A DNA stretch of 64,000 bases from Macrostomum hystrix (Eukaryota > Animalia > Platyhelminthes), in contig CATNEN010000039.1 in NCBI GenBank assembly GCA_950097015.1, positions 14,880,001 through 14,944,000 on the forward strand, given 5' to 3'. This document shows positions 15,788 to 39,278 of this stretch, piece after piece. The notes beneath the pieces are model-generated. The model saw only the letters and a list, made by a program, of their open reading frames with translations, searched no databases and was not told the DNA's origin. The position numbers were made by a program, and so were the translations under genes. The first letter of the stretch is position 1, and each line of letters starts with the position of its first letter.

Positions 15788-16806
15788 CTACAGCGCTGGC
15801 AGCAGCATCGCTAGCAGTATCGTGCAGCCCAACAGTACGGATACGAACAGCAAATTCTGGTGCCTAGCACCCGCAGCAGTCGGGGTTGCACCCGCGGCAG
15901 TCGTGGTTGCACCTGCAGCAGTCGGGGTTGCACCCGTAGCAGTCGGGATTGCACCCGCGGCAGTCGTGGTTGCACCCGCGGCAGTCGTGGTTGCACCCGC
16001 GGCAGTCGTGGTTGCACCCGCAGCAGTTGGGGTTGCACCCGCAACAGTCGTGGTTGCACCCGCAGCAGTCGGGGTTGCGCCTGCAGCAGTCGTGGTTTCA
16101 CCCGCGGCAGTCGTGGTTGCAGGAGGAGTGTACATCCGTAATGAGCTACAATCAGACTTTGCTGCGTTTGGAGTGCATTCGTAGCGTTCCATCTTCCGAT
16201 GTCTCGAGTAGTAGTTATACAGCATGTTGACATACATTTCACAGCCGATAATTGTAACATAGCCCCCGTCTTTGGGGGCTATGAAGTCCAATTTAAGGCA
16301 CTTTTCTGATGGAGGGCAAAAAATTTCAGATGGAAATTCTTGCGCCCAATCGACCTTCCATTTTTTGTAGTGAAGGCATGGTGCCAGATCACGTTCTAGA
16401 TCGTTGGTCAAGTTAAATACACTCGCTTTATTGCATTTTTCACCCGTGCAGTCTTTGCAATATTTTGTAGCAAGACAGGAGCCGCAACCATATTTCAGTC
16501 GCTAAAAAAGTTTCCGCATAGGGCAAAATTTATAGGGCGAACTGTTGCTTTATGATTTCGAATTGATATGCTAATTAAATTAGTTTAATTCATTCGGTCG
16601 CTCACCACTTCGCCTTCAGTTGGATCATATTCCACTTTACACTTGGTGACGCTGGCAGGAGTACAATCTGTATCAGTATCGTCATTCTTATATTCATAAA
16701 ATGGTACTTTATGATTCCTCGACCAGATACATTTAATACAATCAGCCAGCTGAATGCCTCCAAGTGCAAGAAACACGCCAACAATAACCAGCTTCATAGT
16801 CGTCAT
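15788..16806 (-). CDS. Surface-protein family copy 1: signal peptide, LU/three-finger-like domain, 6-Cys domain, 12 Thr/Ala/Gly heptads, GPI-type tail (304 aa); exons 16806-16606 and 16501-15788
   Basis: A phase-0 104-nt intron (GTGAGC...TTTTTTAG) joins MTTMKLVIVGVFLALGGIQLADC..EV in frame to RLKYGCGSC..CKDCTGEKCN. The same structure is conserved in four paralogues. Confidence 0.88.
15867..16118 (-). repeat. 21-bp coding minisatellite, 12 units (TTTAAGA/TPTAAGA stalk)
   Basis: Unit GCACCCGCRGCAGTCGKGGTT on the + strand. Confidence 0.95.
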
Positions 16807-17191
16807 GATTGCCAGCTTCGATTCCGAATAGCCCAGTTAGATTTGGTCGATTAGCTGGCAGGTGGCAGTTGAACTGCAGTCAATTCTTGATCCGATTTGC
16901 AACGGCTGAGTAGAATCGGCCAGAATGCTGAGTCGAGTGTTGTCAGTTGTTGGATTTGATTTTTCGTTTCGGGCCGCTGCCCCTTCAACATGCTGCAGAA
17001 AATGCAGGTGCGAGCCGGCTTGGTCTATGGCTGCGCTGGCTGACACAGGGGTGCCCGCCTTTTGTCTATGGCAATTTTCAGCTCTACTTTGCTTTTTTCA
17101 TGCACGACTTTTCTGAGATGAACTTTTGTGTTGTACTATTAGAAATCTTTCTAGCTTATTGGAGTTTCTCTCTAACTAAGAAGTATTGCAC

Positions 17192-19920
17192 CACAGAATA
17201 CACCAGAATGCCCAATCAAGCTCCCTGCGAAAAAAAATTGAGGCAAAAACTATTTGCTAGCTACGCTACTTCTAAGGTGAAGTGATTTGCAAGTAGTGCT
17301 GGCTTTTTTATCAACCCGAGTGTATTGAGATCGTCTTTGAGCTTGTCTTTCCTTCCATCTATCCTATCTATTTGATGCCCAGTGTATAATAACTCTGCTT
17401 AGTTGCCTGCGCTCCTTAGAATAAATCACAGAATACAATATTGCTGCATCGCACTTGACTGACGGCTACTTTATTCTGCCCAGTGATTTACGCCTCTGTT
17501 GTGCCATGCCAACAGTCTCACGTCGGCAGTGCGCATCATACGGCTGTAAATCCTATGCGTATAGAAATCGACCTGGAGTTCGTTTTCATAAGTTTCCAAT
17601 CAAGAGTCCTGAAAGGTACGTGACATCAGAATTATGATATCTTACGAGTAGCTATGTAGCAGACCTCTCAGCTCTCTCTATTTATTGAATTTACGATTGG
17701 TGAGCTGAGTATTTGGGGGGGATGGTAGCGTAATTTATGAGGGTGAGAGTAGGTATTTTCCACGCTGTTCGGGTTATAACCTAAGGTAGCGCTAATGCCC
17801 GAGCGGCAAGACACTAGCTACTAATGGGAGCGGAATTTCCTGCTGCTGGCACGAGGGCTAAGGTCACTGATCTGGGGCACACAGTCCGTGGGGCGTATCA
17901 GGATGGATTGAAGTTGCCTGGTGAATGTCCTTCGCACTCTCAAGCTTACTTTCCTCTATGGGGTCCGGGATTAATACAGTCTCAAGAGGGAAAAAGGCGG
18001 AGTTTTGGGACTTCAGGGGGGGTATTTAGGGAATTTTTAGGTGGACTTCAGATAGACTTCAGGTGGACTTTTTGGACGGGATTTAAGACGGTATATTGGG
18101 ATTTCAAAGGGATCATATAATAGGGTGGGTTTTGGTAAAGAAGGCCGACGAGAGATCTTTGGGAGAGGATTGGGAAGGCAAAGGTATCTTTAACTGTTTT
18201 CCTTTTATCAGGAAAATAACTCAGAAACTCGGTCTATTTAATAGCGAAACTGGAATAGAGGTTGGAAGTGGAATCGCTTATATTTCGTTGTATCGAACGT
18301 AGAGCTAAACGTTGAGAACGCATAGAACGTAAAGTAGGTCAAACAGGTAGCGGACGGTTAAGCGAGGTGAGCAAGGGTGCGCAAGGGTGAGGCAAGGTTG
18401 TGGCAAGGTCAAGATCGCATTTTCTCTCTATATATACACAAAGAAATTGGGGTGGGTGCATGTTTCTACTTTAAGAGTAATATAACGCACAAAGAGCTCG
18501 GCGTGATATAACGACATTTAGCTAGCGCGTGAGGAAAAATGGCGGGAATTTAAAATTATAAAGAAAACCTAATTTTACACTGCCTCAGTTATTTTAGTCG
18601 CTTCTGACAGGCATGCCATAATAACACGGATTGCTTTCTTGCTCAGTTTGAGATCACTAAAGGTTGTGTCTATGCAACTGTTTTCTAATGGAGACTGCAA
18701 ATCTGTGTTGTCCAGAAATCCTACTCAAGATCACGTAGAGAATGGCTTTGCATGCATCCGACGACGAGGCGGCTTTAATGACTGTCCGGAGTATAAAGAA
18801 GCTGCTGCGGCATTCCGCTCACTGGCCGTCAACCAGTTACTTGGCTGCCCATCGTTTGCTAACAACTGCAAACCCGACAGTTCAGTTCCCATGTTAACCA
18901 ATGTCATTCAGCTAATCACCGATGAAATCAAAGCGGATGGTGAGAAGTTCCCTATCAGTTCCGTTAATGAGAATGCGTGCCTGGCATTGACACAAGTTTA
19001 TGAAGATTCAGGAATGTTCGGAGAAAAGTGTGCCTATGTTGGAGGTTGGATGCTTCACTGCTTGTTGCGGTTGCGCACCGCTTGCCAGGACTGCAAAATG
19101 GGTCTCCTAAGTCGCGATGGTTGCAATGAGGGCATGCGTTTCCTAGAAAAAAGGAATATGCAAGACACTGGAAACGGCGGTCTGTACGTACCAAGTGAAG
19201 CGGTCTTGAAAGCAGTGCAGAAGATGGAGATGGTTTTCGACCAAATTTGCAATGTGTAGGACTCGATTAGAGTATGGAAGGGAATCAGTATCAGTGCCAG
19301 AGTCCAGCCTGCAGCACAAGCAGCTGCTGCAACTGAGCTACATCTACACAACAGTGAGCACACAAATGAATGGCTTTCATCTCTCACATTTGTACACACG
19401 CCTGCGGTTACATCACTGGTGCAAAGCTCAACAGGCATTACTTCGAGCTGCCAGGAAGCGCGGAGCTCCGAGTACGAGTACAGCTTCAGCAGAACAACGA
19501 AAGCTGGGGCGCCTGTTATCCGCTAAAGTATAGGATGCCTGTTGTTTGATGCTTAAACTGCTGCTCATGTTGCTGTTTATAAACTGTTCTAGTTTGCAAA
19601 TTTCATGTTCAATTTTTATGTACACCTATATCACGTACCCAATTGCTTTGAACTGCTGCTCATTCTGCTGTTTCTTAACTGTTCTAGTTAGTGTTGAATG
19701 CTCACAAATAATATCTGCATTTTTATGTCGCTACAGCTGCAAATATACAATCGGGCCTCTCTGTCCATAAAAAGCTCCAACCTGAATAGACATACAAAAG
19801 GGTGACTACTTCTCAAATTTTAGTACTACTTAACTCTTCTTCACCTCAGGAGTAGTGTCTATGGCTTTATATTTCGGCTTTAGATTTGGAAGCTGATTGA
19901 GCATTCTAGTGTATTCTGTG
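17192..19920 (+). mobile_element. P-element/THAP9-superfamily DNA transposon, internally deleted
   Basis: ~27-bp imperfect TIRs CACAGAATACACCAGAATGCCCAATCA / TGATTGAGCATTCTAGTGTATTCTGTG. 8-bp TSD TATTGCAC (17184-17191, 19921-19928); empty site at ~32625. THAP start MPTVSRRQCASYGC..FHKFP (17506) and transposase C-terminus QDHVENGFACIRRRGGFNDCP (ORF 18639-19259). Confidence 0.93.
17655..18579 (-). mobile_element. Solo-LTR-like insertion inside the P element
   Basis: TGTA...TACA ends, with a minus-strand TATA-like run (~18430) and AATAAA (~17681). No TSD found. Confidence 0.4.
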
Positions 19921-21373
19921 TATTGCACTTTACAAGCATCGAATGTATGTTTCACATGGGCCCATATTTGACAGACTTTTTAGACAGAACCAGGTTAACG
20001 AAAACTAGGCTAGCAATGAAGTCGGTGACTTATTACGGGATGAGTGAGCCGTGATGCATATCAAAGTATGCAGCAAGTTCTTCAAAGTTCAACCAATACA
20101 ATGTATCCTATATGTATCGAAGGTCTCTGTCTTCTCACTGGCTCATATATAATACTAACCAAACCGAAAGCATCGAACTGAAAATGAAAATGATGCAAAA
20201 CATAATGGCAATAAGTTCATTCAGTTGTCACTGTCAGACTTTATGTTTGTACCCAGAGCTGCATTACAGAAGAGCATAAGCGTATTCTACGGGCACCATG
20301 GCACGATCGCGGGGGCGAGTGGGTCAGCGGCTAACGTCGCTGCCTCGCACTCCAAAGGACGCTAGTTCGATTCACCCTTCAAGTCACGATTAATTTCGGG
20401 ACTTGTTGGGGGGGTTTGGACAGTAGCGACCGGCGGAGGTGCACCATATTTCGTGCAATCAAAGCTTGAAATAATAGCTTCGCTCCTACCTTCTGTGTGC
20501 CTGTTCTGCGTTGTATGAGTTTGTGCGTTGGCGCTGGGGCTAGGGATGCCAACCGGTTTTTAAACCGGTTTAAAAAACGGTTTTTAGCAGGAAAACCGGT
20601 TCTAAAAAACCCGGTTTTTTGTCCGGTTTTTTGGTGGTTTTTAATGGGTTTTTTATTTTAATTATGTCTCACAGAGTCACACTTTTTGCACTTTGGAGAA
20701 AAAATAACTGGTAACAAAATTTGCTTCGTGGTGGCAGCGCTACTAAGTCCTTTCAAATTGAACATTAAACTTAAAATTAAATCTAAGTTGAACTTGAAGT
20801 ATAAATCTAAATTGGGGCCTAATCTAAAACTATCTAAGTCTAAAAATAAAAACATCAAGGGTTCGCCGTTTCTAATCTAACCATCTCAGGGTACCGCCAG
20901 TTTGCCTTGGCCAAAATCATCAAATTAATCAATAATTGCTACCAGTGCATCATTAAGTTTAAAGTTATTATTCAGCAAAATTAAGAGTTCGCGAATTAGT
21001 TACGAACTAATCCGAACTAAATCTCAATTTATATTAAGTTCGCATTGGGTCTTTATTTTATTTCGCATTTAGTTCGCATTGGCTACGGAACGATTCCGAA
21101 GAAAGTCCACGGAAAATTTGAATTGGCGCGATATTCAATTTCCGCGAAACCTAACTGTAAGCAGCTTAGAGTTCGCGGCCCGCAGTGTACACTGCGGGGG
21201 TAGAGCGTACACGCCTGCGTGCGTGCTTGCGTGGCGTGATTGGGGGGTGGGTACGCCCACCCCAGTGTTTCTGGCCAAATATAATAGTGCTAGCGAGCCG
21301 GTATGGCTCTTCGCGTTTTGTGTGCATGCTACCTGACAAACCAGCGTCTTACACTGGTGGCAGCGGTCTCAGC

Positions 21374-22168
21374 ATGACTAAGCAAGAATCTTTACTGCCG
21401 CAAAAGTTCAGCGGCGCCGGCAGTGACTCAAATGTCAGAATGTGGCTAAGCATGTTTGAAGACTTCGCCGATGACAGCGACTGGGACGATAAGAAGAAGG
21501 CGAAGAAGTTGAAGCTGCTGCTGTCTGGAGAGGCACAGATCTTTGTGTGGGAACTTCCAGACGAAAAGAAAGTGAGCTACGAGCAGCTTAAGGTGGAGCT
21601 CATCGGGCACTTCGGCGACAGCCTGAGCAGCTACCGGGCGATGGAGGAGTTTGAGGAACGCAAACGTCGGCCAAATGAGTCTTTGAGAGAGCTGGCGTAC
21701 AACCTCAAGCTGCTGCACCTCCGGGCTCGGCCAGACGACTCTGTGGACGCCAGGGAGAAGGACGTGAAGTTCCGCTTGATGCGCCTCCTCCCAGCAGCTG
21801 TAAGAGATACGCTGCTCAAAGACCAGGACGCGGACTCCTGTCCGTTGACAGTCCTGATTGACCGGGCGGCCCGCATTGAGTTGGTGAGTCGCCAGTCATC
21901 AGCGACGTCAGCAGCCGTGACGGCGGAGGACAGTCGGATCAGCCGTCTGGAGCAGCAGGTTCAGCAGCTGGCTGTAGGTGTGCGAACGGGAGCCGCAGGC
22001 AAGGAAAGCCGTCAAAGGGCCATCAAGTGCTTCAGCTGCGGGGAAGTTGGCCACATCGCGAGGCAGTGCCCGAGAGCGGCAGGAGCCCGCTGCAGCAGGT
22101 GCTCAGGCAAGGGGCACACGGCGGCGGTCTGCCCGACACCAGCTGCACAGCCGCAGGGAAACTGCTGA
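21374..22168 (+). CDS. gag: Gypsy B gag with two CCHC knuckles
   Basis: ATG follows the PBS; PQKFSG..W, CFSCGEVGHIARQC, CSRCSGKGHTAAVC. Confidence 0.9.
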   Translation: MTKQESLLPQKFSGAGSDSNVRMWLSMFEDFADDSDWDDKKKAKKLKLLLSGEAQIFVWELPDEKKVSYEQLKVELIGHFGDSLSSYRAMEEFEERKRRPNESLRELAYNLKLLHLRARPDDSVDAREKDVKFRLMRLLPAAVRDTLLKDQDADSCPLTVLIDRAARIELVSRQSSATSAAVTAEDSRISRLEQQVQQLAVGVRTGAAGKESRQRAIKCFSCGEVGHIARQCPRAAGARCSRCSGKGHTAAVCPTPAAQPQGNC

Positions 22169-22198
22169 GGGTCGGCAGCCTGGGGCCAGCGCCGACCC
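22156..22198 (+). promoter_or_regulatory. -1 programmed ribosomal frameshift signal
   Basis: Slippery heptamer G GGA AAC (22156-22162), 6-nt spacer, stem GGGTCGGC/GCCGACCC (22169-22176/22191-22198). Pol is in the -1 frame relative to gag. Confidence 0.8.
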
Positions 22199-25100
22199 CC
22201 TCTCAAGGGGCCCACAGATCAGCGTCGTCCATCTTTGTGCCAGTGCGTTTCGGCAGGCACAGCTCGCCCGCCCTGCTGGACACGGGCGCGCAGATTTCGC
22301 TGATGGACAAGTCGCTGTACGATAAGCTTGACTGCCGGCTCGACTGCAGCGACATCAGCGTCATGCCGACCTCTGTCGACGGCTCGCGGCTGCGCTGCCT
22401 TGGCCTGACGACGGCGGAGGTTGCGATCGGCAGCGCGATTCGAGCGCGGCACAGTTTTACCGTGGTGGACGGCATCCAGCCTAGACTGATTCTCGGCATG
22501 GACTTCATCGGCCGGGTGTCGCAGACGGTGACCATCGACATGAAGGAAGGCGTCGTCCGGTTCGACAGCGATACGGTGGCTTTCAGCAGCGAGCAGCCGC
22601 GGGCCAGTTGCCGCCTGGTGCCAAGCGTTCTGGTGGCGCGCGTGGCGGTCAACACGGAGCTGCCGGCGCGGAGCGAGAAGGTCGTATGGCTCCGGGTGGA
22701 CTCCAGCCGAGAGCAGGGGGTATTCGAGCCCTGCGAGGACTTCGTAGCAGCCACGGCGGTGCTTTCGGCGCGCGTGCTGACTATCTCGGACGACGGCCGA
22801 ATCCCCGTCAAGATGTGCAACCTGGCCGAGGAGCCCGTGCTGCTGTACGCCAATAAAGCCGTCGGGACGTTCGAGGGTGCAATGGCCGGGGGGAGGAGCG
22901 ACTATCTCCATGAGGACCCCCTCGGCTGGAACATCAACCCGGAGCTGTCCGAGGCGGATGCGGTGAAGCTGCGCTAGCTGCTGGAGCAAAACGAGGACCT
23001 TTTCGCAAGGCACGAGTACGACCTGGGCACGACGGAGCTGCTGCAGCACAGGATAGATCTGGAGCCCGGAACGCGGCCGCACAGGCAGGTTCAGCGACGT
23101 CTGCCTCTGTCCGTGCGGGACCAGGTAGACAAGAAGATCGGCAAGATGCTGGACAGCGGCATCATCGAGCCGTCCATGTCTCCTTGGGCCAGCAACCTCC
23201 TGGTGGTGCGCAAGAAGAACGGCGACATCAGGCTCTGCACCGACTGGCGACAGCTGAACGCCTGCACAGTCAAGGACGCCTACCCGCTGCCGCATCTGCA
23301 GCAAGCCATGGACGCACTGGTCGGCTGTTCCTGGTTCTCCACCATCGATTGCCGGCAGGGTTATCACCAGGTGGAGGTGGCAGAGGAAGACCGGCCAAAG
23401 ACTGCCTTCTACTCCACCCGCGGCCTGATGCAGTTCCGCAAGATGGGCTTCGGGATGTGCAACGCCCCAGCGACATTTCAGCGCCTTATGGAGCTCGTCA
23501 TGTCCGGCTTATCCTGGGAGGTGGTGCTGACCTACATCGACGACATCATCGTCTTCAGCAGAATCTTCAACGAGCATCTGGCGCGGCTAGCACAGGTCCT
23601 TCAGCGGCTTCGAGGGGCCGGGCTCAAGCTGCACAGGGCGAAGAGTGTCTTCGGCCACCGCCAGGTGCTGTACCTGGGGCACCGGGTCAGCGAGCAGGGC
23701 ATCGCGCCAGACCCGAGCAAGGTGGACGCCATCCGCAGCATGTCCAGCCCGACGACAGCAGAGGAGGTGAAGCGGTTCCTCGGCATGCTAGGCTTCTATC
23801 GCCGCTTCATCCAGGACTTCAGCCAGACTGCGAGGGTGCTGCACGACGTCAGCCAGACAGCGAGAGACTTTAGATGGAGCAGCAGTTGCAAGCGGGCGTT
23901 CAACGAGCTGAAGGACAAGTTGACGACTGCCCCGGTGCTGCGGCTGCCCGACTTCAGCAAGCAGTTCGTTTTGAGCTGCGACAGCAGCCAGTTCGCAGTG
24001 GGCGCCGTGCTCAGCCAGTTGCACGGGGACGCTGAGCTGCCTGTGGCTTTCGCATCGCGCACGCTCAACAAAGCGGAGCGAAATTACTCGGCGACAGACC
24101 GGGAGCTGCTGGCGCTGGTGTGGAGCTTGAAGCACTTCAGAACGTACTTGCTCAGTGTTCCCAGCTTCACCGTCTACTCCGACCATCGGCCGCTTCAGGG
24201 ACTGCTGGCGACCAAGGACCCGGAAGGCAGGCTGGCGCGGTGGCTGTCTACGCTGCAGCAGTTCTCGTTCTCGCTGCTGTACCGGCCAGGCCGGGAGAAC
24301 GTTGTGCCAGACGCACTGAGCCGGGTGGCCGGCACGCGCCTGCAGCCCCGCTGGGAGGCCGCGCGCCTGCATGAGGAGCAGCGGCAGGACACGCTACTGA
24401 GCAAGGCGTTCCATGCGCTAGCGACAGGAATCGACAATCTGTCTGACACCTGGGCGGCGCAGGTTCGCGAGCTGCTGGATGGGGCATCAATAAGTACGGC
24501 GGGCGTCCTGCTGTTCCACGGCAAGCCGGTCATTCCCAGCCACCTGCGGCCGAACTTCCTGCAGGAGGCGCATTCCAGCGACCAGAGCGCCCACCTCGGT
24601 GTTGACAGGACGGTGGCGAGGCTGGCGGAGCGCTGCTGGTAGCCGGGCCTGCGGCGGGACGTGGAGAACTGGGTGGCGAGCTGCGCCGCCTGCCTAACCA
24701 AGAAGAGTCCGACCAGGCCGCAGCGGGCACCGCTGCAGACGACAGGCCAGCCGACAGCGCCTTGGCAGCAGGTGCAGATCGATATTAAAGGCCCGCTGCC
24801 GCGCACGACAGACGGCAACGCCTACATCCTCAGCATGTGCGACACCTTCTCCAAGTGGATGGAGACATCGGCGCTGGCGACGATCGACGCCGTGACGGTG
24901 GCGGATGCGCTGCTCAGAGCCGTTGTGCTGCGGCACGGTGCCCCACAAGTGCTGCACAGCGACCAAGAACGGCAGTTTGAGAGCGACGTCTTCGTCCGGC
25001 TCTGCGAGCAGCTGGGCATCGAGAAAACTCGCACATCGCCATTCCACCCAAGCGGCAATGGCGTCGTGGAGCGCGGCAACCGGACACTGGGTGACATGCT

Positions 25101-25848
25101 GGCGACGGTCGTGTCGGAGAGCCAGCAGGACTGGGACCGGAAGCTGCACTACGTTACCTGGGCCTATAACACCTCTGTGCACAGCACCACCGGCCTTAGC
25201 CCGTACCAGGTCCTGCATGGCTGGCCGCCGCGGCTGGCGCTCGACAGCTGGCTGGTGGACGGCGACAAGGCGGCGAGCGGCAGCCCGCACGACTTTCTGC
25301 AGCAGACGCAAGAGAACCTGGAGGGCGCCTTTGACGCGGTGCACGGCCGGCTGCGGGACGCCCAGGCGGCGCGCAACCAGCGAGTCAACCAGGGTGCCAG
25401 ATTCGTGCCGTTTGAAGAGGGCCAGCTGGTAATGCTGCGCAACTCCGTCGTCAAGCGCGGCCAGACGCGGTGCCTCAGCGACAAATGGAAGGGGCCGTAT
25501 CGGATCCTGCGGCGCCTCGGCGAGGTGAACTACCGCATCCAGGACCAGGCAGGCCGCCGGCGCAAGCTGGTGGTGCACCACGACCGGCTCCGACTCTTCA
25601 TTCAGCGGCGGCCGTCGCTGGAGCTGCCTGCTGCCGCCGATGCCGACACGAACGCCAACGGCCTCGCCGTGCGACCGCCCAGTCCAGCGGCTGACCCGGG
25701 TGGCGATGCGTTGGTCGGCTGGCCGGAACCGGACCAAAACGTGCAGCCCGATGATCCGCCGGCGGCCCCGCCCGAGCCGGCCGAGGCTCTCAGACGCTCG
25801 GCGAGAGAACGCCGGCCTCCTGACTTTTACATGGCTGGCTTTGCTTGA
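22162..25848 (+). pseudogene. pol: Gypsy B pol (PR-RT-RH-INT) in one frame, interrupted by two TAG codons (22975-22977, 24640-24642)
   Basis: ORFs at 22027, 23113 and 24661 share a frame; motifs LLDTGA, YIDD, CDSS, HLG, GPY. Confidence 0.9.
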
Positions 25849-27233
25849 CTGAACTGCTTCTAGGGGGAAAGTAGTGTAAGCAGCTTAGAGTTCGCGGCCC
25901 GCAGTGTACACTGCGGGGGGTAGAGCGTACACGCCTGCGTGCGTGCTTGCGTGGCGTGATTGGGGGGTGGGTACGCCCACCCCAGTGTTTCTGGCCAAAT
26001 ATAATAGTGCTAGCGAGCCGGTATGGCTCTTCGCGTTTTGTGTGCATGCTACCTGACAAACCAGCGTCTTACATAACTATAACAAATTTAAAATTAATAA
26101 TTCCAAGAAACTTTATTATTATTAATCGGCACGCACACCTTAAACAATTTCAGGATTGTATATAAGTTCTATCTTCTATGCCTATTTAGTGCTTTTTAAA
26201 AAATTGGCACACAAACCGGTTTTTAAAGACCGGTTTTCTTATAAAAGACGGTTTTCAAACCGGTTAACCGGTTCTCAATAAGGGCCGGTTTTTGGCATCT
26301 CTAGCTGGGGCGTTAGACCTTGCGGGGGGTGGCTGGAGGGCGGGTGTACACCGCCGCGCGCTCTCTGGAATTCCGTCAGCGCGATTGGATAAGTGTACAC
26401 TCATCACCCGGCCCCCCCTGAGGACTGATTTCTTATCAGCCTTCCGCCCCGGCTTGGTCTTGGTCTCTGTGCGTGTGGGGCGGGGGTGGGGGACACTGCT
26501 GCCTATTCTGGGTGCCTCCTGCCCTCCCGGGCTGGTCTGTGCTGCTGTGTGTGGTGCCTGCTCAGGGGAGGCGGCGCGATGGGCGCTAAAGCGCCTAGTT
26601 CGTCGGTCTGGGGGCGTGCCGCTCCGTCGCTTGTGCGACAAGTGTCCCGGGCCCCCCTGCAAATAGATAGAAGAGATAGATGACACGATCGCTTGAATGC
26701 ATCATTCATAATGTAAGACGCTAATTAAAATAGTTATTCTTTGATCAACAAACCGATGCTACATAATAACATCAATTCCGTTCAATAATTAAAGTATAAA
26801 CGTATTAAATGTATTGTCAATATTCTCATCATGCGCATATCTTTTCTATAACCAATGAATGTCACAGCAAGAGGTTTTGAAACATAACAATTCAAAGAAC
26901 GATACACTTTACAATGTAACAAATAATACAAAAGATGTGGAATGAATGCTTTAAGAAATTTGTAAGATTTCCAAAACGTGCGAAATAGAACGAAATGACT
27001 GTACGAGAATTAGTTATTGATCTCTTTCACCCAAAAACAAAAAAAGCCCAATCAAGTTCCATCAACAAAATATCCATCTTATCTATCAATCAACATCAAA
27101 ATGACACTATATCAAACTTCCATCTTAGAAGATTAAGTGGCAGCTTGCTGCCACCTTGGCCATCGCCGCCGCCACCTTGGCAGTCGATGGCACCGCCGCC
27201 GCCATCGCCTCCACCGCCGCCGCATACACTTAC

Positions 27234-27422: not shown

Positions 27423-28386
27423 CTGTTCAGGGCCGGCGATAAAAGTAATGTTGTAAGTTGCCTGAAAGTGTAGTGTAAGGTAATTAATTACATGAGGGAT
27501 AAAACACGTTGAGTGCAAAATTATAGAGATTGACATTTGGGTCAAAACACTGTCTGTGTACCCAATCCTTCTGTCACATGTGTTAACTCCGAATCAACTG
27601 TGCATAACAACTTTATATTTTATACTTTACTCAATATGAACCATTTTACAAACCTAAAGGCGAGGCTCTACATTTCCTAGCTGCTTAAATTAAAATACGT
27701 GACCAACAATACCTCCTTTCTTACATATATACAAATATACACTACAGCATTTAATGTCGCAAAGGATTCAGAGAAACAAATGATGTACGAAAACAAAAAT
27801 ATTTATATTATAGTCGACACACTCTTTATGTCAGTGCTGCCAAGTCGCCATTAGAAAAAACGATTAACATCATTGTTTCAACTACCAAAGATATGAATAG
27901 AATGAAATTTATCGGAAGTTTGCAATCCAGCCAACAAAAAAATTACGAACGTCAAGTGGACAAAAGTGATGCAAATTAAAAGAGAAACAATTTTCCGATC
28001 ATACGATACAGACGTAGCTTAAAACACATCGCCGTTCCGATTCTGTTCACTGTTCATTGAAAATAGACTATTTTGAAATAATCAATTTTCAAATAACAAT
28101 TTAACGCCCACAGGTACGAGAAGCCATCGGATCCGACTTTGCAGTGAACTTTTGTGCCAATGATTTCGGTTTATGAAAAAAGTACGTAAAACCGAGATCA
28201 ATATAACAAGCCCAAAGTTAGCCACAGCTGCCTCATTGCTTTGTTGCATTACAGAGAACGAAAACAGATTTCTATAAAAAACACAGATATTTACTACTTA
28301 GTCATGCTGCTGTGACCAAAATTTAAAGCGTCGGGAGTCAATTTAATATGCTAAATTTTTTTTAAATAATTTAACTAATGTACGAG

Positions 28387-29628
28387 GTCTCATCTCTCCC
28401 TGTCTCATCTCTCCCCTGTCTCATCTCTCCCGTCTCATCTCTCCCCTGTCTCATCTCTCCCGTCTCATCTCTCCCCTGTCTCATCTCTCCCGTCTCATCT
28501 CTCCCCTGTCTCATCTCTCCCGTCTCATCTCTCCCCTGTCTCATCTCTCCCGTCTCATCTCTCCCCTGTCTCATCTCTCCCCTGTCTCATCTCTCCCGTC
28601 TCATCTCTCCCCTGTCTCATCTCTCCCTTCTCATCTCTCCCGTCTCATCTCTCCCCTGTCTCATCTCTCCCGTCTCATCTCTCCCGTCTCATCTCTCCCC
28701 TGTCTCATCTCTCCCGTCTCATCTCTCCCGTCTCATCTCTCCCGTCTCATCTCTCCCCTGTCTCATCTCTCCCGTCTCATCTCTCCCGTCTCATCTCTCC
28801 CGTCTCATCTCTCCCCTGTCTCATCTCTCCCGTCTCATCTCTCCCGTCTCATCTCTCCCCTGTCTCATCTCTCCCGTCTCATCTCTCCCGTCTCATCTCT
28901 CCCCTGTCTCATCTCTCCCGTCTCATCTCTCCCGTCTCATCTCTCCCCTGTCTCATCTCTCCCCTGTCTCATCTCTCCCCTGTCTCATCTCTCCCCTGTC
29001 TCATCTCTTCCCTGTCTCATCTCTCCCGTCTCATCTCTCCCCTGTCTCATCTCTCCCCTGTCTCATCTCTCCCCTGTCTCATCTCTCCCTGTCTCATCTC
29101 CCCCTGTCTCATCTCCCCCTTTCTCATCTCTCCCCTGTCTCATCTCTCCCCTGTCTCATCTCTCCCCTGTCTCATCTCTCCCCTGTCTCATCTCTTCCCT
29201 GTCTCATCTCTCCCGTCTCATCTCTCCCCTGTCTCATCTCTCCCCTGTCTCATCTCTCCCCTGTCTCATCTCTCCCTGTCTTATCTCCCCCTGTCTCATC
29301 TCCCCCTGTCTCATCTCTCCCCTGTCTCATCTCTCCCCTGTCTCATCTCTCCCCTGTCTCATCTCTCCCCTGTCTCATCTCTCCCCTGTCTCATCTCTCC
29401 CCTGTCTCATCTCTCCTTGTTTCATCTCTCCCCTGTCTCATCTCTCCCCTGTCTAATCTCTCCCCTGTCTCATCTCTCCCCTGTCTCATCTCTCCCCTGT
29501 CTCATCTCTCCCTGTCTCATCTCTCCCCTGTCTCATCTCCCTCTGTCTCATCTCTCCCCTGTCTCATCTCCCCCTGTCTCATCTCTCCCTGTCTCATCTC
29601 CCCCTGTCTCATCTCTCCCTGTCTAATG
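28387..29628. repeat. 14-16-bp pyrimidine-rich satellite (GTCTCATCTCTCCC[CT])n
   Basis: Directly visible. A diverged array recurs at 30350-30610. Confidence 0.97.
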
Positions 29629-30265
29629 TCTGGTAATATATGACAACACTGACCTTGTGTTAATTTAATGGCGAAATGAGAATTTCTCATCCAAAACAGT
29701 TAAACACATCAATAAACACATCTTTTTGACACCTCACACTTTCGAGAAACATTGCAAATTTGTAGAACCTCTTGTGCAGGACTATGCGGACACTTATATC
29801 GTGCTTTAATTATAGCATCGATTTTAGTATATGCGTTTGATAATCGCCTATTGCGCACCTCCTAAGGCAAAAGGGCAACACACCTTTCTGTCTGCCAAAT
29901 GTTGAAAATAGTCTGACCATCAAACAGCACGAAATCCAATCGGTTGGTTTGTGACCTAGACAAATTGCTCAGTCAACGAGTCTGGTAACCAAAAAGGGTA
30001 ACACTGTACGCTAACCGTGAGTGATCAGGTTTCCATCACCCTGTAATTAAACAGTTCTAAACTAAACATATATACCTTTTTCAACAGAAAATTTGTTGAC
30101 GAAAATCATTCAGGAGGCGAGTTATTGAGCTTAGAAATGTACCCTAGCTCATTCTCTGCCAAAACTTTGACAGCGGCTATAGACAATCTTTGCCGTAGAA
30201 AAATGCTACAGCATTCACTCCAAGCATGAGGTCAAAATCCTCCTAGTCGAGTCTAGCGTATAGAC

Positions 30266-30330
30266 CAGGGGTCGGCAAACTCCGGCCCGCGGGCCAGATG
30301 CGGCCCTCGAAGCTCCCAAATCCGGCCCGT
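30266..30330 (+). mobile_element. Truncated hAT (Charlie/SPIN-like) left end
   Basis: CAGGGGTCGGCAAAC.CCGGCCCGCGGGCC..ATGCGGCCC is a typical hAT terminus. No right end found. Confidence 0.65.
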
Positions 30331-30349
30331 TGCCCTTTCTGACATCTAC

Positions 30350-30610
30350 AGTGTCCTGTTTCATCTCTCTCGTGTCTAATCTCTTCCGTGTCTCATCTCT
30401 TCCATGTCTTATCTCTCCCGTGTCTCATCTCTCCCTTGTCTAATCTCTCCCCTGTCTTATCTCTCCCGTGTCTAATCTCTCCTGTGTCTCATCTCTCCCG
30501 TGTCTAATCTCTACCGTGTCTAATCTCTCCCGTCTTATCTCTCCCGTGTCTAGTCTCTCCTGTGTCTAATCTCTCCCGTGTCTAATCTCTTCCGTGTCTC
30601 ATCTCTTCCA
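30350..30610. repeat. Diverged 16-bp satellite (GTGTCTAATCTCTCCC)n
   Basis: Same family as 28387-29628. Confidence 0.9.
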
Positions 30611-31162
30611 TTCTGTTATATTTCCAGTTCTGATTTTATTTCAGATGTTTAACAACTGAAAAAATGTCTCACTGTGATAACGATTGAGCATTTATTTTTA
30701 AGCCGGTGTAACTTTTTTGCTTCAGTAATTATTTTGCACGAATTGTCATTTTTTAAATAAACATGACTACTTTCAAACGACAAGCCATGTTTAACTGATC
30801 ATTGTGCTGCTTGTGCGGTGTATTAAAAAACAATTCAACACAGACAGATATATTTAGGAACAAATTATTACAAAGCTGACACGCTTGAGATTTGCAACGT
30901 AAGTCGGTCCGTTTTTTCTATTGAGAGGAGGCTTTTAGCACCTTGATTTTTTCAGCACATTTTCAGACAGAACTTTGAAAACATTATTCCATACATTCAA
31001 CTCATCAATTCAATGCTTTCAATACATTCAACACATCAATTCAATGCTTTCAATACATTCAACACATCAATTCAATGCTTTCAATACATTCAACTCATCA
31101 ATTCAATGCTTTCAATACATTCAACACATCAAACACAACATTAAAAACTGTTAGCGCAAAGT

Positions 31163-32247
31163 CTACAGCGCTGGCAGCAGCATCGCTAGCAGTATCGTGC
31201 AGCCCAACAGTACGGATACGAACAGCAAATTCTGGTGCCTAGCACCCGCAGCAGTCGGGATTGCACCCGCGGCAGTCGTGGTTGCACCCGCGGCAGTCGT
31301 GGTTGCACCCGCGGCAGTCGTGGTTGCACCCGCAGCAGTCGTGGTTGCACCCGCGGCAGTCGTGGTTGCACCCGCAGCAGTCGGGGTTGCACCTGCGGCA
31401 GTCGTGGCTGCACCCGCGGCAGTCGTGGCTGCACCCGCGGCAGTCGGGATTGCACCCGCGGCAGTCGTGGTTGCACCCGCAGCAGTCGGGGTTGCACCCG
31501 CGGCAGTCGTGGCTGCACCCGCGGCAGTCGTGGCTGCACCCGCAGCAGTCGTGGTTGCAGACGGAATGTACATTCGTAATATGATACAATCAGTTGCATT
31601 TGCATTTGGTCTACATTCGTAGCGTTTCATGGTTTCATGGTCATAACGATGGTTGATCCAGTTTTCACAGCCGATAATGTCTGCGTTTGCTTGAATTTCC
31701 TCAGATTGAGGCTTTTTAGAAACAATTTTAAGACACTTTTCAGATGGACTGCAAAAAGCTTCAGTAAGTTGTTTATATTCTTTATACCATATTTTGTACT
31801 TAAGGCATGGTACCAGATCACGTTCTAGATCATTGATAACTACACTCGCTTTATTGCAGTTATCACCCGTGCAGTCTTTGCAATATTTTGTACGGGGACA
31901 GGCGCCGCAACCATATGTCAATCGCTAAAAAAAGTTTCCAGGCAAAAGGCAAAATATATAGGTCAAACTGTTGCTTTATGATTTCGAATTGATTTGCTAA
32001 TTAAATTAGTTTAATTCATTCCGTCACTCACCACTTCATTTTCATGTCTGCTTCTAGGATCATATTCTACGTAACACTTGTTCATGTTTGGATCACAATG
32101 TACCTGAGCATCATTCATTGAATCTTGCTTATATAGAAAGAATGATGATGTCATACCAAGCGACCAGATACATTTAATACAATCAGCCAGCTGAATGCCT
32201 CCAAGTGCAAGAAACACGCAAACAATAACCAGCTTCATAGTCGTCAT
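31163..32247 (-). CDS. Surface-protein family copy 2 (325 aa, 15 stalk heptads, GPI-type tail); exons 32247-32032 and 31924-31163
   Basis: 107-nt GTGAGT..TTTAG intron in phase 0; all 14 ectodomain cysteines conserved. Confidence 0.88.
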
Positions 32248-34255: not shown

Positions 34256-34534
34256 ACTGACTCAAGATTTAGTGACTGACTCAAGATTTAGTGACTGACT
34301 CAAGATTTAGTGACTAACTCAAGATTTAGTGACTGACTCAAGATTTAGTGGCTGACTCAAGATTTAGTGACTGACTCAAGATTTAGTGACTGACTCAAGA
34401 TTTAGTGACTGACTCAAGATTTAGTGACTGACTCAAGATTTAGTGACTGACTCAAGATTTAGTGACTGACTCAAGATTTAGTGACTGACTCAAGATTTAG
34501 TGACTGACTCAAGATTTAGTGACTGACTCAAGAT
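34256..34534. repeat. 19-bp VNTR ACTGACTCAAGATTTAGTG, ~14.7 copies (1.7 copies at the paralogous site 14946-14977)
   Basis: Directly visible. Confidence 0.97.
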
Positions 34535-35265
34535 GGCCTTCTTTTCCCGTCGTGCCCGGTTCCGGCTGCGGCGGGCTTCTTCGACCGTTTGGAGCGGCCG
34601 GTCATCGTTTCCTGAGCCCCGCTAGTAGGTGAACCGGAGGGGCCGGAATGGGCGCTGTCAATGGCGGAGGGGCCGGGTTTGTAGCGGGAGCTTCAGTCCC
34701 GGTTTCAAGGATGGCATTAGCAGAAGCCATAGCTGAAAGCAGGTGCAGGGTTTACTCATAAGCGAGGTAAAAAGCCTTTGGCACCTCTCCCTCAGAGCCC
34801 AGGCCAGACGTACCTAATGATCAGGAGGGGTCCTGGATGGGTCGTCAAGCGCCGTTGCTTATTCTGTCCGGCTTTCTGTCGGACATTCTGTTATATTTCC
34901 AGTTCTGATTTTATTTCAGATGTTTAACAACTGAAAAAATATCTCATTGTGATAACAATTTAGCATTTATTTTTAAGCAGGTGTAACTTTTTTGCTTCAG
35001 TAATTATTTTGCACGAATTGTCATTTTTTAAATAAACATGACTACTTTCAAACGACAAGCCATGTTTAACTGATCATTGTGCTGCTTGTGCGGTGTATTA
35101 AAAAACAATTCAACACAGACAGATATATTTAGGAACAAATTATTACAAAGCTGACATGCTTGAGATTTGCAACGTAAGTCGGTCCGTTTTTTCTATTGAG
35201 AGGAGGCTTTTAGCACCTTGATTCTTTCAGCACATTTTCAGACAGAACTTTGAAAACATTATTCC

Positions 35266-35531
35266 ATACATTCAACTCATCAATTCAATGCTTTCAATAC
35301 ATTCAACTCATCAATTCAATGCTTTCAATACATTCAACACATCAATTCAATGCTTTCAATACATTCAACTCATCAATTCAATGCTTTCAATACATTCAAC
35401 TCATCAATTCAATGCTTTCAATACATTCAACACATCAATTCAATGCTTTCAATACATTCAACACATCAATTCAATGCTTTCAATACATTCAACACATCAA
35501 TTCAATGCTTTCAATACATTCAACACATCAA
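35266..35531. repeat. 31-bp VNTR just downstream of the copy 3 stop codon (~8.5 units; ~4.5 at 30991-31131; ~1.5 at 15709-15756)
   Basis: Unit ATACATTCAAC[AT]CATCAATTCAATGCTTTCA. Confidence 0.95.
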
Positions 35532-35561
35532 ACACAACATTAAAAACTGTTAGCGCAAAGT

Positions 35562-36943
35562 CTACAGCGCTGGCAGCAGCATCGCTAGCAGTATCGTGCA
35601 GCCCAACAGTACGGATACGAACAGCGAATTCTGGTGCCTAGCACCCGCGGCAGTCGGGGTTGCACCCGCGGCAGTCGGGATTGCACCCGCGGCAGTCGTG
35701 GTTGCACCCGCAGCAGTCGGGATTGCGCCCGCAGCAGTCGGGATTGCACCCGCAGCAGTCGGGATTGCACCCGCAGCAGTCGGGATTGCACCCGCGGCAG
35801 TCGTGGTTGCACCCGCAGCAGTCGGGATTGCACCCGCGGCAGTCGTGGTTGCACCCGCGGCAGTCGGGGTTGCACCCGCAGCAGTCGGTATTGCACCCGC
35901 GGCAGTCGTGGTTGCACCCGCGGCAGTCGTGGTTGCACCCGCAGCAGTCGGGATTGCACCCGCAGCAGTCGTGGTTGCACCCGCGGCAGTCGTGGATGCA
36001 CCCGCAGCAGTCGGGATTGCACCCGCGGCAGTCGTGGTTGCACCCGCGGCAGTCGTGGATGCACCCGCAGCAGTCGGGATTGCACCCGCAGCAGTCGGGA
36101 TTGCACCCGCGGCAGTCGTGGATGCACCCGCAGCAGTCGGGGTTGCACCCACGGCAGTCGTGGTTGCACCCGCAGCAGTCGGGGTTGCGCCTGCAGCAGT
36201 CGGGGTTTCACCCGCGGCAGTCGTGGTTGCAGGAGGAGTGTACATCCGTAATGAGCTACAATCAGACTTTGCTGCGTTTGGAGTGCATTCGTAGCGTTCC
36301 ATCTTCCGAGGATTCTTATCTCTCGAGTAGTAGTTATACATCAGGTTGATATACATTTCACAGCCGATAATTGTAACATAGCCCCTGTCTTTGGGGGCTA
36401 TGAAGTCCAATTTAAGGCACTTTTCTGATGGAGGGCAAAATATTTCAGATGGAAATTCTGGCGCCCAATTGACCTTCCATTTTTTGTAGTGAAGGCATGG
36501 TACCTGATCGCGTTCTAGATCGTTGGTCAAGTTAAATACACTCGCTTTATTGCATTTGTCACCCGTGCAGTCTTTGCAATATTTTGTAGCAGGACAGGCG
36601 CCACAACCATATTTCAGTCGCTAAAAAAGTTTCCGCATAGGGCAAAATTTATAGGGCGAACTGTTGCTTTATGATTTTGAATTGATATGCTAATTAAATT
36701 AGTTTAATTCATTCGGTCGCTCACCACTTCGGTACGAGAAAAAACAGTTGAAGCTTCAGGATGATATTCCACTTTACACTTGGTGTCTTTGGCAGGAGTA
36801 CAATCTGTATCAGTATCGTCATTCTTATATTCATAAAATGGTACTTTATGATTCCTCGACCAGATACATTTAATACAATCAGCCAGCTGAATGCCTCCAA
36901 GTGCAAGAAACACGCCAACAATAACCAGCTTCATAGTCGTCAT
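35562..36943 (-). CDS. Surface-protein family copy 3 (425 aa, 28 stalk heptads, GPI-type tail); exons 36943-36725 and 36620-35562
   Basis: 104-nt intron differs by 1 nt from copy 1; ectodomain is closest to copy 1. Confidence 0.88.
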
Positions 36944-37188
36944 GATTGCCAGCTTCGATTCCGAATAACCCAGTTAGATTTGGTCGATTAGCTGGCAGGT
37001 GGCAGTTGAACTGCAGTCAATTCTTGATCCGATTTGCAACGGCTGAGTAGAATCGGCCAGAATGCTCAGTCGAGTGTTGTCAGTTGTTGGATTTGATTCT
37101 TCGTTTCGGGCCGCTGCCCCTTCAATATGCTGCAGAAAATGCAGGTGCGAGCCGGCTCGGTCTATGGCAGCGCTGGCTGATACAGGGG

Positions 37189-38096
37189 ATCGTCCTGGAT
37201 CGTCTCTCCCGGTTTCCGCCGCATGTCGCTCCAGAACCGGAAGCGCTCCCGCACAATGAAGCGCTTGGCGTCATACTGTTCATCCATGAATTTCCCAATC
37301 TGGTCCATTGTGAGCTTGTTGATCTCCTTCGGCGGCGTCTGCTGTCCTGCTAAGTTCGAGAGAAGCTTGTAGGTGGACGGAGACTGGTTCGTCAGGAACA
37401 CCTGGGCCTTCTTGTCATCGGGTATGGAGTTCGCACCCGTGAAAGTGTTGAATCTGGCCAAGTAGTCGGGCCAAAGCTCGGACGTGAAGTCGAATGGCGA
37501 AAAACTCGGAGTTGACGTCGTAAAGTGTGTCGCCAAAACCGCAGCCTGGGACTGGCTGCCTGTAGGCTGTAGAGACCGGATGAGGTCTAGCAATAACTGC
37601 CGGTCAGCTTCACGCTGGCGACGATCTTCCTCCATCTGCTGCTGTAGAAGTGTGATTACTTCTTCGCTATCGGGCATGATGGTTGCAGCTTGATCCTTCG
37701 TTCAGTAGTGACTGTCGTTGCAAATCAGACGTCCTCGAAGTTGATCAAGATCCTGCTTGCGACGCCTGAAAATCCCTGTTGTATCTTTAATAACTGACGC
37801 AACGGAGATTCCGATTTGTAGAGTAATAAGGAAAACACGCCAATAGGCGGCACTCGGCAGGCAGACGAATAGGAGTGTGTATTTGATATATTATAGCAGT
37901 CGGCGTACGAAAAATATACATGAGTGCAGGGGTCGGGGGCTTTTATTGATAGGCCCAAAGGCATGGGGAAGAGCTTTCTAGGAAGTTACTAAAAATAGAC
38001 TACGCGGGAAGTTTCTGAAACAAAAGTGTATGGACTTACGCCTTACGACAAAGAATAGAAATTTCTGGAAAGTTCCTGGGAATTACAACAACAACA
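37189..38096 (-). mobile_element. gag: 3'-truncated Gypsy element C: LTR (~37777-38096), PBS-like site and gag N-terminus (37677-37189)
   Basis: TGTTG...CAACA ends; GGCGTCGCAAGCAGG resembles the PBS of element A; gag FSPFDFTSELWPDYLARF..FIVRERFRFW. Confidence 0.82.
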
Positions 38097-38475
38097 GTCT
38101 CAACACTTACCCTCCTTTTCTTTCTTATCTTTGTCCCTTCCTCTTCGTTTCGCTGCTGCTTTCGCGAAGTTTGTGCCTCTCTCGTGCTTCTTTGTTCGTG
38201 CTTTGGGGGCACAAAATGACTACTTTCAAACATCAAGCCAGGTTTAACTGATCATTGTGCAGCTTGCATGGAGTGTTAAAAAAATTCGGAGCAGATATAT
38301 ATATTTATTTGGTCACAAAATATGATAATCCAGGCATGCTTGGGATTTGCTACGGAAATCGGTCAGTGTTTGCTATTGAGAGGAGGCTTTTAGAGTCTTG
38401 ATATTTTCAGCACATTTTCATACAACTTTCAATACAAGTTGTCAGAACTTTCAATACATTCAATACGCTCGTACA

Positions 38476-39278
38476 TCAAAAAATGAAAGAATAAAGCTTA
38501 AATCGCCAAATAAGCAGCGCAATCAGAATCGCTATCAGCATCGCGCAGCCCAGCAGTACGGCTACGAACAGCCAATTCACCCCAGAAGTCGTGGTTGTAG
38601 GCGGAGTGTACATTCCTAATTTGATACAACCAGTTTTTTCTGCGTTTGGTCTGCATTCGTAGCGTTTAAATGCTTTTGCAGCGCGAAAATTACTGTTGAT
38701 CCAATTTTCACAGCCGATATATTCAAATCGCACATGCCGAAGAATCTGAACAGCTTGAAAGCACTTTTCTGATGGAGGGCAAAAGGATTCAGCAGCTCGT
38801 GGTCTAGACGATGTAAGCATCTGGTTGTTAAGGCATGGTACCAGATCACGTTCAAGATCATTGATTAAGTTTAATACACTCGCTCCATTGCAGTTACTAC
38901 CCTCGCAGTCTTTGCAATATTTTGTACTGTGACAGGCGCCGCAACCATATTTCAGTCTCTGAAAAAGTTTCCGCATAGGGCAAAATTTATAGGGCAAACT
39001 GTTGCTTTATGATTTCGAGTTGATATGCTAATTAAATTAGTTTAATTCATTCGGTCGCTCACCACTTCTTCTTCTTCTTCAATTCTAGGATCATATTCCA
39101 CTTTACACTTGGTGATGCCTGGAAGACAATTTGTTTCAACAGAATCCATTGAACTATCCTTATACATAGAAAATTTTGATAACCTATTGTGCGACCAGAT
39201 ACATGTAATACAATCAGCCAGCTGAATGCCTCCAATTGCAAGAAACACGCAAACAATAACCAGCTTCATAGTCGTCAT
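38476..39278 (-). CDS. Surface-protein family copy 4 (232 aa, no stalk, TM helix and short tail); exons 39278-39063 and 38958-38476
   Basis: 104-nt GTGAGC..TTTCAG intron and the same Cys scaffold. Ends PPTTTTSGVNWLFVAVLLGCAMLIAILIALLIWRFKLYSFIF. Confidence 0.86.

Follow-up and report, generated by a model that had tools for sequence, protein, structure and literature searches.

In schistosomes, surface proteins of the Ly6/uPAR (LU) kind form the SmLy6 family, which includes Sm29 with its two uPAR/Ly6 domains and hydrophobic C-terminus and counts 11 genes in S. mansoni (PMC4492491), and a 2026 survey of invertebrates recorded about 12 LU proteins per flatworm genome, or 61 in five genomes (PMC13719153). 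In the genes of snake three-finger toxins (3FTx), an intron splits the domain into an N- and a C-terminal half, and a conserved signal is paired with accelerated exons (PMC12390062). Here we report on a 64-kb stretch of the genome of the flatworm Macrostomum hystrix (called the window in the following; contig CATNEN010000039.1, positions 14,880,001 to 14,944,000), which contains exactly four gene copies, A to D, of a family encoding proteins with two cysteine-rich finger domains behind a signal peptide. We conclude that this family represents a sequence-orphan, lineage-specific and diversifying variant of the three-finger/Ly6-uPAR kind, and that the four genes probably belong to a lineage-specific set of about 40-50 genes for cell-surface glycoproteins with two finger heads and diversifying loops.

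By analogy, the SmLy6 proteins are the nearest described relatives in kind. They, too, are surface proteins of a flatworm, combining a signal peptide with a three-finger domain on a cysteine frame and, at the C-terminus, a hydrophobic or glycosylphosphatidylinositol (GPI) signal; their genes are clustered and diverge fast, and Sm29/SmLy6D carries two uPAR/Ly6 domains in tandem (PMC4492491). However, similarity at the sequence level was not detected by a profile of 28 Macrostomum members run against 1.84 billion representative sequences, and the 11 schistosome genes compare with 40-50 here. Moreover, the Macrostomum proteins exhibit long stalks of 7-aa repeats, CxxC in place of the CC that precedes the final CN, a domain 2 lacking one disulfide, and ends that switch between GPI-like, transmembrane and tail-less. 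The snake toxins supply the best structural matches to the model of domain 2 described below, while domain 1 resembles them in its 8-Cys spacing; compared by layout and not by intron phase, they also share the domain-dividing intron, the conserved signal peptide and the fast-evolving mature parts (PMC12390062). The Macrostomum proteins have two domains, a stalk and a predicted tether, with only a stub of 5 residues for finger 3 of domain 1, whereas each toxin is a secreted protein of one domain whose gene contains an extra intron within the signal peptide.

The mammalian multi-domain LU proteins uPAR, C4.4A, CD177 and TEX101, together with CD59, resemble the predicted layout of the family by tandem LU domains on a GPI anchor, and the fold matches of domain 2 include uPAR domain 3, CD177, TEX101 and CD59; the mammalian proteins differ in that the Macrostomum proteins show no match to Pfam UPAR_LY6 and that the mammalian genes have neither a mucin stalk nor a hypervariable tandem array. 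Argos and other proteins with two-finger (2FTX) domains also consist of tandem small finger domains, with an intron-split first domain whose C-terminal part shares an exon with the second, and they lack one finger, as may hold for domain 1 here (PMC12236594). Their cysteine counts are different, and they are secreted without a stalk or anchor. The sea urchin 185/333 genes, for which an immune function has been demonstrated, are clustered two-exon genes with near-identical 5' ends, variable mature regions and variation in repeat length. The folds of their proteins are unrelated to the Macrostomum family, and the likeness is an analogy only.

Reading of the window sequence confirmed four two-exon genes on the minus strand at the coordinates of an initial annotation made from the sequence, which had obtained four intact genes by joining open reading frames across a phase-0 intron. 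The products of 304 aa (A), 325 aa (B), 425 aa (C) and 232 aa (D) match the annotated lengths, and the junction numbers given there correspond to the first and last intron bases. All four introns (104 nt in A, C and D, 107 nt in B) are of the GT-AG type and begin with GTGAG; they end in a T-run followed by AG in genes A to C and in CAG in gene D. Because exon 1 closes on a whole codon in every gene (..GAA GTG) and exon 2 opens in frame (CGA/AGA CTG AAA/ACA TAT GGT TGC), the joins are in phase 0. The annotated family features, consisting of a shared signal peptide, the motif YGCGxC..KYCKDCxGxxCN, an NDLERD linker, a 6-Cys domain and a hydrophobic end, are present in all four products. The gene parts are as follows.

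16606-16806, minus strand: gene A, coding part of exon 1 (67 aa), signal peptide and N-half of domain 1
16502-16605, minus strand: gene A, intron of 104 nt, GT..AG, phase 0
15788-16501, minus strand: gene A, exon 2 (237 aa plus stop) with the C-half of domain 1, linker, 6-Cys domain 2, Thr/Ala/Gly stalk and GPI-like hydrophobic end
15867-16121, minus strand: gene A, stalk, 21-nt (7-aa, TTTAAGA-type) tandem repeat of 12.1 copies
32032-32247, minus strand: gene B, coding part of exon 1 (72 aa)
31925-32031, minus strand: gene B, intron of 107 nt, GT..AG, phase 0
31163-31924, minus strand: gene B, exon 2 (253 aa plus stop) with GPI-like end
31242-31559, minus strand: gene B, stalk repeat of 15.1 copies
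36725-36943, minus strand: gene C, coding part of exon 1 (73 aa), conserved parts covered by RNA contigs of paralogues
36621-36724, minus strand: gene C, intron of 104 nt, GT..AG, phase 0
35562-36620, minus strand: gene C, exon 2 (352 aa plus stop) with GPI-like end
35641-36231, minus strand: gene C, stalk repeat of 28.1 copies
39063-39278, minus strand: gene D, coding part of exon 1 (72 aa), with the signal peptide at 39210-39278 and the N-half of domain 1 at 39063-39209
38959-39062, minus strand: gene D, intron of 104 nt, spliced out in RNA (joint 38958->39063 in runs X5, X6, X1 and X3)
38476-38958, minus strand: gene D, exon 2 (160 aa plus stop), RNA contigs over 38635-38958 with 0 mismatches
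38887-38958, 38836-38886 and 38626-38835, minus strand: gene D, C-half of domain 1, linker and domain 2, respectively
38479-38625, minus strand: gene D, short Thr stalk and transmembrane-like tail
38221-38475, minus strand: gene D, 3' untranslated region (UTR), end approximate, RNA contigs of X5 (38221-38578) and X6 (38249-38567)
39279-39650, minus strand: gene D, 5' UTR (to 39345, the end of the RNA contigs) and about 300 nt of conserved family flank upstream

An open reading frame lies immediately upstream of each gene (e.g., 39309-39572), which we took as a chance frame within the conserved flank.

While the window indeed holds four genes, the initial description as a four-gene family falls far short of the genome-wide number, which amounts to at least 40-50 loci. 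The exon 2 product of gene D (160 aa) matches 50 places in the genome, 11 of which contain stops. About 40 of these matches lie within 10.1-17.5 Mb of the chromosome-scale contig that also carries the window (C39); the others are located on C38 (one), on C11 (four) and at C39:4.40-4.43 Mb (four). A 146-nt stretch across the 5' UTR and signal peptide recurs with 93-100% identity at 40 or more places (49 candidates). Among 30 fetched loci, all except one have exon 1 about 104 nt upstream of exon 2, and in most of them the ATG is intact, the donor is GTGAG and the acceptor is an AG after a T-run. Around gene D, the duplicated unit extends from about 39650 to about 38200. A search of the literature on Ly6, three-finger and cysteine-rich families retrieved no report on this family in Macrostomum or planarians.

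A multi-module relative is present on the minus strand at G000:C39:4407275-4425369 (loci L031 and L032). Its exon 1 encodes a signal peptide and the N-half of domain 1, and each of the later exons encodes the C-half of domain 1, a linker, domain 2, a mucin stretch and the N-half of the next domain 1. These later exons measure 281 aa, 449 aa and, as a single open frame, about 4,900 aa, and the final exon is without a hydrophobic tail. From its sequence, this gene looks like that of a giant secreted mucin with at least four two-domain heads, each split by the same phase-0 intron.

Gene D and at least three paralogues support that the family genes are real, spliced and expressed. We aligned the contigs of four sequencing runs, none of which is on record as RNA, to positions 36300-39400 of the window, covering gene D and part of gene C; runs X5 and X6 derive from organism C (study P2) and runs X1 and X3 from organism A (study P1). 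The joint 38958->39063 was present in all four runs and thus in both studies, skipping exactly 104 nt with CT..AC on the plus strand, i.e., GT..AG on the gene strand. This is the very junction (39062/38959) at which the initial annotation had proposed to look for spliced transcripts. The sides of the junction were up to 159-169 nt long, with 0 mismatches in X5 and X6, and the transcript spans from 39345 to about 38221. Because the 1.1 kb separating genes C and D, including a retroelement fragment, had an RNA contig depth of zero, and a pattern search of the 220-Mb assembly found no intronless copy or retrocopy, the contigs represent RNA and gene D is spliced as predicted. In further contigs, the sequence agrees with the conserved beginning of exon 2 and with the conserved portion of exon 1, with 18-33 differing letters between them. 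These letters correspond exactly to the 3' ends that exon 1 has in the paralogues L025/L012, L004 and L013, where they are followed by GTGAGC in the genome. Since these ends are joined to exon 2, at least three more family members are transcribed and spliced at the same intron.

The transcripts of gene D from organism A differ from the assembly by five coding changes, as read from the contig alignment. They fall into three codons (38732-38733, 38814 and 39175-39176), and all of them change amino acids. The resulting replacements K35S, T49A and V76T are all located in finger loops, two of them caused by adjacent double changes. The RNA contigs of X1 and X6 both stop at 39345, right after the gene-strand sequence ..TGACTGCAG (window 39345-39350), which could mark the start of transcription, the splice acceptor of an upstream exon or the site of a trans-spliced leader.

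The mode of divergence was analyzed with 25 intact genes, yielding 300 pairs which share history, by calculating the silent (dS) and replacement (dN) divergence for the different parts of the coding region.

Signal peptide: median dS 0.03, median dN 0.02, pooled dN/dS 0.77
Domain 1 C-half and linker: median dS 0.08, median dN 0.07, pooled dN/dS 0.83
Domain 1 N-half: median dS 0.22, median dN 0.35, pooled dN/dS 1.58
Domain 2: median dS 0.59, median dN 0.51, pooled dN/dS 0.86

In the N-half of domain 1, dN exceeded dS in 88% of the 300 pairs, while the divergence amounted to 0.06 in the intron and 0.04 in the 300-nt upstream flank. The upstream flank, signal peptide, intron and linker thus differ by 3-8%, in contrast to the hypervariable finger loops. 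Nine independent sister pairs showed 110 replacement and 14 silent changes in the N-half of domain 1 (omega 1.94, Fisher p=0.017) and an omega of 1.0 in domain 2. The replacement divergence of domain 1 in these pairs (0.104) was higher than both the silent divergence (0.056) and that of the intron (0.031; upstream 0.039). Replacement changes in the loops of domain 1 therefore outrun both silent and intron changes, in agreement with the annotated hypervariability, and the loops vary on a fixed cysteine frame. At silent sites, the variable parts of these sister pairs diverged 3.6 times more than the conserved coding parts (p=7e-5). Some copies are mosaics: the pair L003/L004 differs by 6% in domain 2 and by 31% in the N-half of domain 1, and genes A and C are near-identical in domain 2 and intron, yet 16% apart upstream. 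Over the family, the distances of domains 1 and 2 correlate moderately (Mantel r=0.57). The conserved blocks are most probably explained by homogenisation through gene conversion, kept out of the loops by selection.

The signal peptide consists of an n-region MTTMK, a 12-residue h-region (Kyte-Doolittle hydropathy, KD, of 2.7-3.0) and a c-region IQLADC, as judged by pattern reading. Domain 1 starts with (D)C-I-K-C-I-W-S, followed by a variable loop, YKND, C-x7-C, VEY and a tip of variable length; the intron lies at this tip of the second loop, dividing the domain into its N- and C-halves in 29 of 30 loci, and the sequence continues with xLKYGCGxC-x5-C-x2-C-x5-CN. The multi-module relative encodes C-I-K-C in its first exon, and in its internal repeats this place is taken by RRCISAIGK, which contains just one of the two cysteines. 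Because the internal modules thus lack the first cysteine ("ADC"), we take the core of domain 1 to comprise eight cysteines; the extra one beside the signal peptide would either be removed by cleavage (A at -3, C at -1) or be unpaired. With a Cys at mature position 3, C-x7-C, GCGxC and CN at its end, the core resembles short-chain three-finger toxins in spacing. Compared with the canonical LU spacing of 8 or 10 Cys, with one Cys near mature position 3, an N-terminal CxxC and a closing CC-x4-5-CN, domain 1 shows the N-terminal motif and the final CN, with CC changed to CxxC and loop 3 comprising 5 residues, and it may effectively be two-fingered like the domains of Argos/2FTX proteins (PMC12236594). 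After domain 1 follows the conserved linker ASVFNL(I/T)NDLERDLVP, occasionally with an N-x-T sequon, and then domain 2 with six invariant cysteines, an invariant Asn three residues past the fifth and no terminal CN. All framework cysteines are invariant across 28 sequences. A profile-profile comparison of the N-half of domain 1 with domain 2 revealed no similarity, so that an internal duplication is without support from the sequences.

The stalks are rich in Thr, Ala, Gly and Pro and contain 29-35% Thr+Ser; those of genes A, B and C are built from the 21-nt repeats (35% Thr+Ser and 47% Ala+Gly in A), whereas that of gene D measures only about 20 residues. Genes A, B and C thus encode a long Thr/Ser/Pro-rich repeat stalk between head and predicted anchor, as in membrane-tethered mucins. 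Their tails consist of small residues and an RHQN spacer, a hydrophobic run of 19-21 residues (mean KD 2.57 in gene A) and then 1-2 residues to the stop (two in gene A). In gene D, a 19-residue hydrophobic segment is followed by the 10 residues WRFKLYSFIF, and in this gene and many paralogues 7-20 residues, often basic or ending in CC, extend beyond the hydrophobic run. The GPI tail put forward in the initial annotation accordingly needs to be divided: by sequence pattern, the ends of A to C look GPI-like, and that of D looks more like a transmembrane anchor. Many paralogues (L006-L018) end in FIWFCC, a possible palmitoylation site, and L016 and L030 exhibit clearly basic cytoplasmic tails (KKKKREKSPRNIKN). 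Three paralogues (L026, L028 and L029) stop right after domain 2, and their products are possibly secreted. Secreted, venom-like toxins were rejected as a description of the family because most members are membrane-tethered according to their predicted tails.

At the sequence level, the family is an orphan. The translations of the eight exons yielded no match to UPAR_LY6, Toxin_TOLIP or related Pfam entries at E values up to 10, with the exons scanned singly and domain 1 therefore never presented whole; we discarded a grass antifreeze repeat matching a stalk and a permease matching a tail as noise. A word-seeded search with exon 2 of gene D against 5.8 billion clustered proteins gave no match, the HMMER profile of 28 members had 0 matches at E values up to 0.001 among the 1.84 billion representatives, and a sequence profile search of the PDB returned chance rows only. 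This agrees with the initial failure to recognize a named family.

Support for a three-finger fold came from structure prediction. Residues 1-115 of exon 2 of gene D were modeled from an alignment of 28 family members; the half of domain 1 contained in this exon was disordered, as expected. Domain 2 (residues 38-115) reached predicted local distance difference test (pLDDT) values of 70-87 and was modeled as a pair of beta hairpins together with a third loop, which contains a helix, and a strand at the C-terminus. Foldseek against the PDB ranked short-chain alpha-neurotoxins first, with template modeling (TM) scores of 0.57-0.64 (normalized to the toxin), a probability of about 0.8 and E values of 0.4-1. 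In an independent structure search of 48,161 representative chains, ranks 1-18 were all three-finger or LU proteins (Z 4.4-3.2), including toxins, Prod1, SLURP-2, GPIHBP1, CD177, CD59, TEX101, PSCA, Lynx2, Lypd6b, uPAR and mambalgin. Re-alignment of the Foldseek list resulted in a Z of 5.0 and root-mean-square deviations of 2.6-2.8 A over 58-59 of 60-61 toxin residues, and its best 50 rows all had the three-finger fold (snake toxins, uPAR, CD59 or TGF-beta receptor ectodomains). Neighbors in ESM features, used as leads only, belonged to the same clan (TGF-beta receptor II ectodomain and Toxin_TOLIP/UPAR_LY6 clusters). The scores are modest in absolute terms for so small a domain, yet the enrichment of three-finger proteins is complete, and we assign the predicted fold to domain 2 with moderate confidence. 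The exon of the multi-module relative, which starts with the C-half and ends with the N-half of domain 1, was also folded to view this domain, but the model was uninformative (mean pLDDT 43). The annotated three-finger (LU) fold is thus predicted for domain 2, whereas the 8-Cys domain 1, on which the comparison with CD59 and Ly6 had been based, contributes its signature only.

Several observations weigh against placing the family among three-finger proteins under diversifying selection. A link to LU/Ly6 families is absent in the Pfam, 1.84 billion-representative and PDB sequence searches. The fold scores of domain 2 are modest in absolute terms (Z at most 5, Foldseek E 0.4-1) with a model built on 28 paralogues, and the fold support concerns domain 2, whereas the likeness of the intron-split domain 1 lies in its cysteine signature. 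Domain 1 also deviates from LU domains by CxxC at the place of CC and by a stretch of just 5 residues in place of the expected finger 3. An omega of about 1 in domain 2 does not alone separate relaxed constraint from mixed selection, and indels in the loop alignments can inflate dN and dS alike. That omega value, together with the stops in 11 of the 50 exon 2 matches and the retrotransposons and DNA transposon around the genes, would fit a cluster of decaying or neutrally drifting duplicates in a transposon-rich region, whose variability would reflect relaxed constraint. We regard this as very unlikely, since none of the framework cysteines varies among 28 sequences, the majority of copies are intact, transcription with correct splicing was seen for several, and replacement divergence in domain 1 (0.104) surpasses that of introns (0.031) and silent sites (0.056).

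The two long loops and 5-residue third loop of domain 1 would also agree with Argos-like two-finger domains instead of Ly6/uPAR domains, in proteins that, tethered or secreted, would trap EGF-like ligands or other growth factors. Tandem two-finger domains are widespread in protostomes according to a 2025 preprint, and in cone snail genes D1 is split over two exons, the second of which also encodes all of D2 (PMC12236594), as in the layout found here. However, Argos is absent from the best 50 rows of either structure search with domain 2, the model of domain 2 aligns to the full length of three-finger toxins including the third loop, and 40-50 hypervariable copies are unlike a conserved growth-factor regulator, so that we consider this reading unlikely. 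A reproductive role would leave the architecture as described and assign the proteins to sperm, egg or seminal surfaces under sexual conflict, like Bouncer, SPACA4 and TEX101. Vertebrate three-finger proteins act in gamete recognition, domain 2 has TEX101 among its fold matches, a dN/dS above 1 is typical of reproductive proteins, and Macrostomum is known for strong sexual conflict; the long mucin stalks, the 40-50 copies and the giant multi-module mucin relative nevertheless fit a body-surface or mucus layer better, making the reproductive role rather improbable. We rank recognition at, or coating of, the body surface and mucus before reproductive recognition, and the latter before growth-factor trapping by Argos-like domains.

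For a family of diversifying surface glycoproteins, we propose that a cleaved signal peptide would route each protein into the secretory pathway. The mature tip would consist of two small disulfide-knotted beta domains, i.e., domain 1 with its 8-Cys core, three-finger-toxin-like signature and third-finger stub, and domain 2 with six cysteines and the predicted three-finger fold. These heads would be carried by a stalk of Thr, Ala, Gly and Pro, presumably O-glycosylated and differing widely in length, and tethered by a putative GPI-type signal in A, B and C or by a predicted single membrane span with a very short tail in D, with no tether in a few paralogues. The finger loops would represent the binding surface and would diversify by duplication, segment exchange and positive selection, whereas the 5' flank, signal peptide, intron, domain 1 C-half and linker would be kept near-identical, most probably by gene conversion. 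With flank, leader and intron nearly the same in each copy, regulation and secretory routing would therefore be shared across the copies. Because of the stalks, anchors, copy number, giant mucin relative and selection pattern, we infer that the proteins likely form a variable layer for recognition or coating on an exposed surface of the worm, where they would bind external ligands that are diverse or evolve fast, e.g., microbes. A possibility we entertain only tentatively is a dedicated variable-receptor system of about 40-50 co-regulated genes with near-identical promoters, leaders and introns, in which diversified loops on stalks of differing length, possibly with expression restricted per cell, would discriminate non-self, microbes or mates.

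The family genes lie in transposon-rich DNA (30-3902, 6987-11044, 21185-25848, 49953-51695 and 57814-60694). The surrounding elements include a Pao/BEL-type polyprotein, two Ty3/gypsy-type gag-pol elements, a piggyBac-type DDE transposase and more reverse-transcriptase fragments. Repeats that have a peptide in common lie on either side of the element at 21185-25848, at about 21079-21336 and 25947-26165. A gag-like open reading frame fragment of 171 aa is situated between genes C and D (37162-37677, minus strand) and had no RNA coverage in the four runs. Just 3' of the stop codons of genes B and C, a 31-nt tandem repeat occurs at 30987-31132 (4.7 copies) and 35262-35531 (8.7 copies), which is absent after gene D. 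A 16-nt microsatellite of about 81 copies (GTCTCATCTCTCCCCT) at window positions 28387-29631 shows an extreme strand skew and produces a spurious open reading frame of 421 aa.

This cluster would raise the surveyed number of flatworm LU proteins several-fold, and it is invisible to the hidden Markov models used in such surveys. We found nowhere described together its combination of two finger domains, mucin stalks of variable length, interchangeable GPI-like, transmembrane or tail-less ends, and a mosaic of conserved DNA and hypervariable loops. Through its conserved 5' end, the entire family could be detected with one probe or knocked down through one target. If the loops bind outside ligands, the family would be a tractable candidate for recognition diversity in an invertebrate, in a laboratory flatworm genus for which RNA interference and in situ methods are available.

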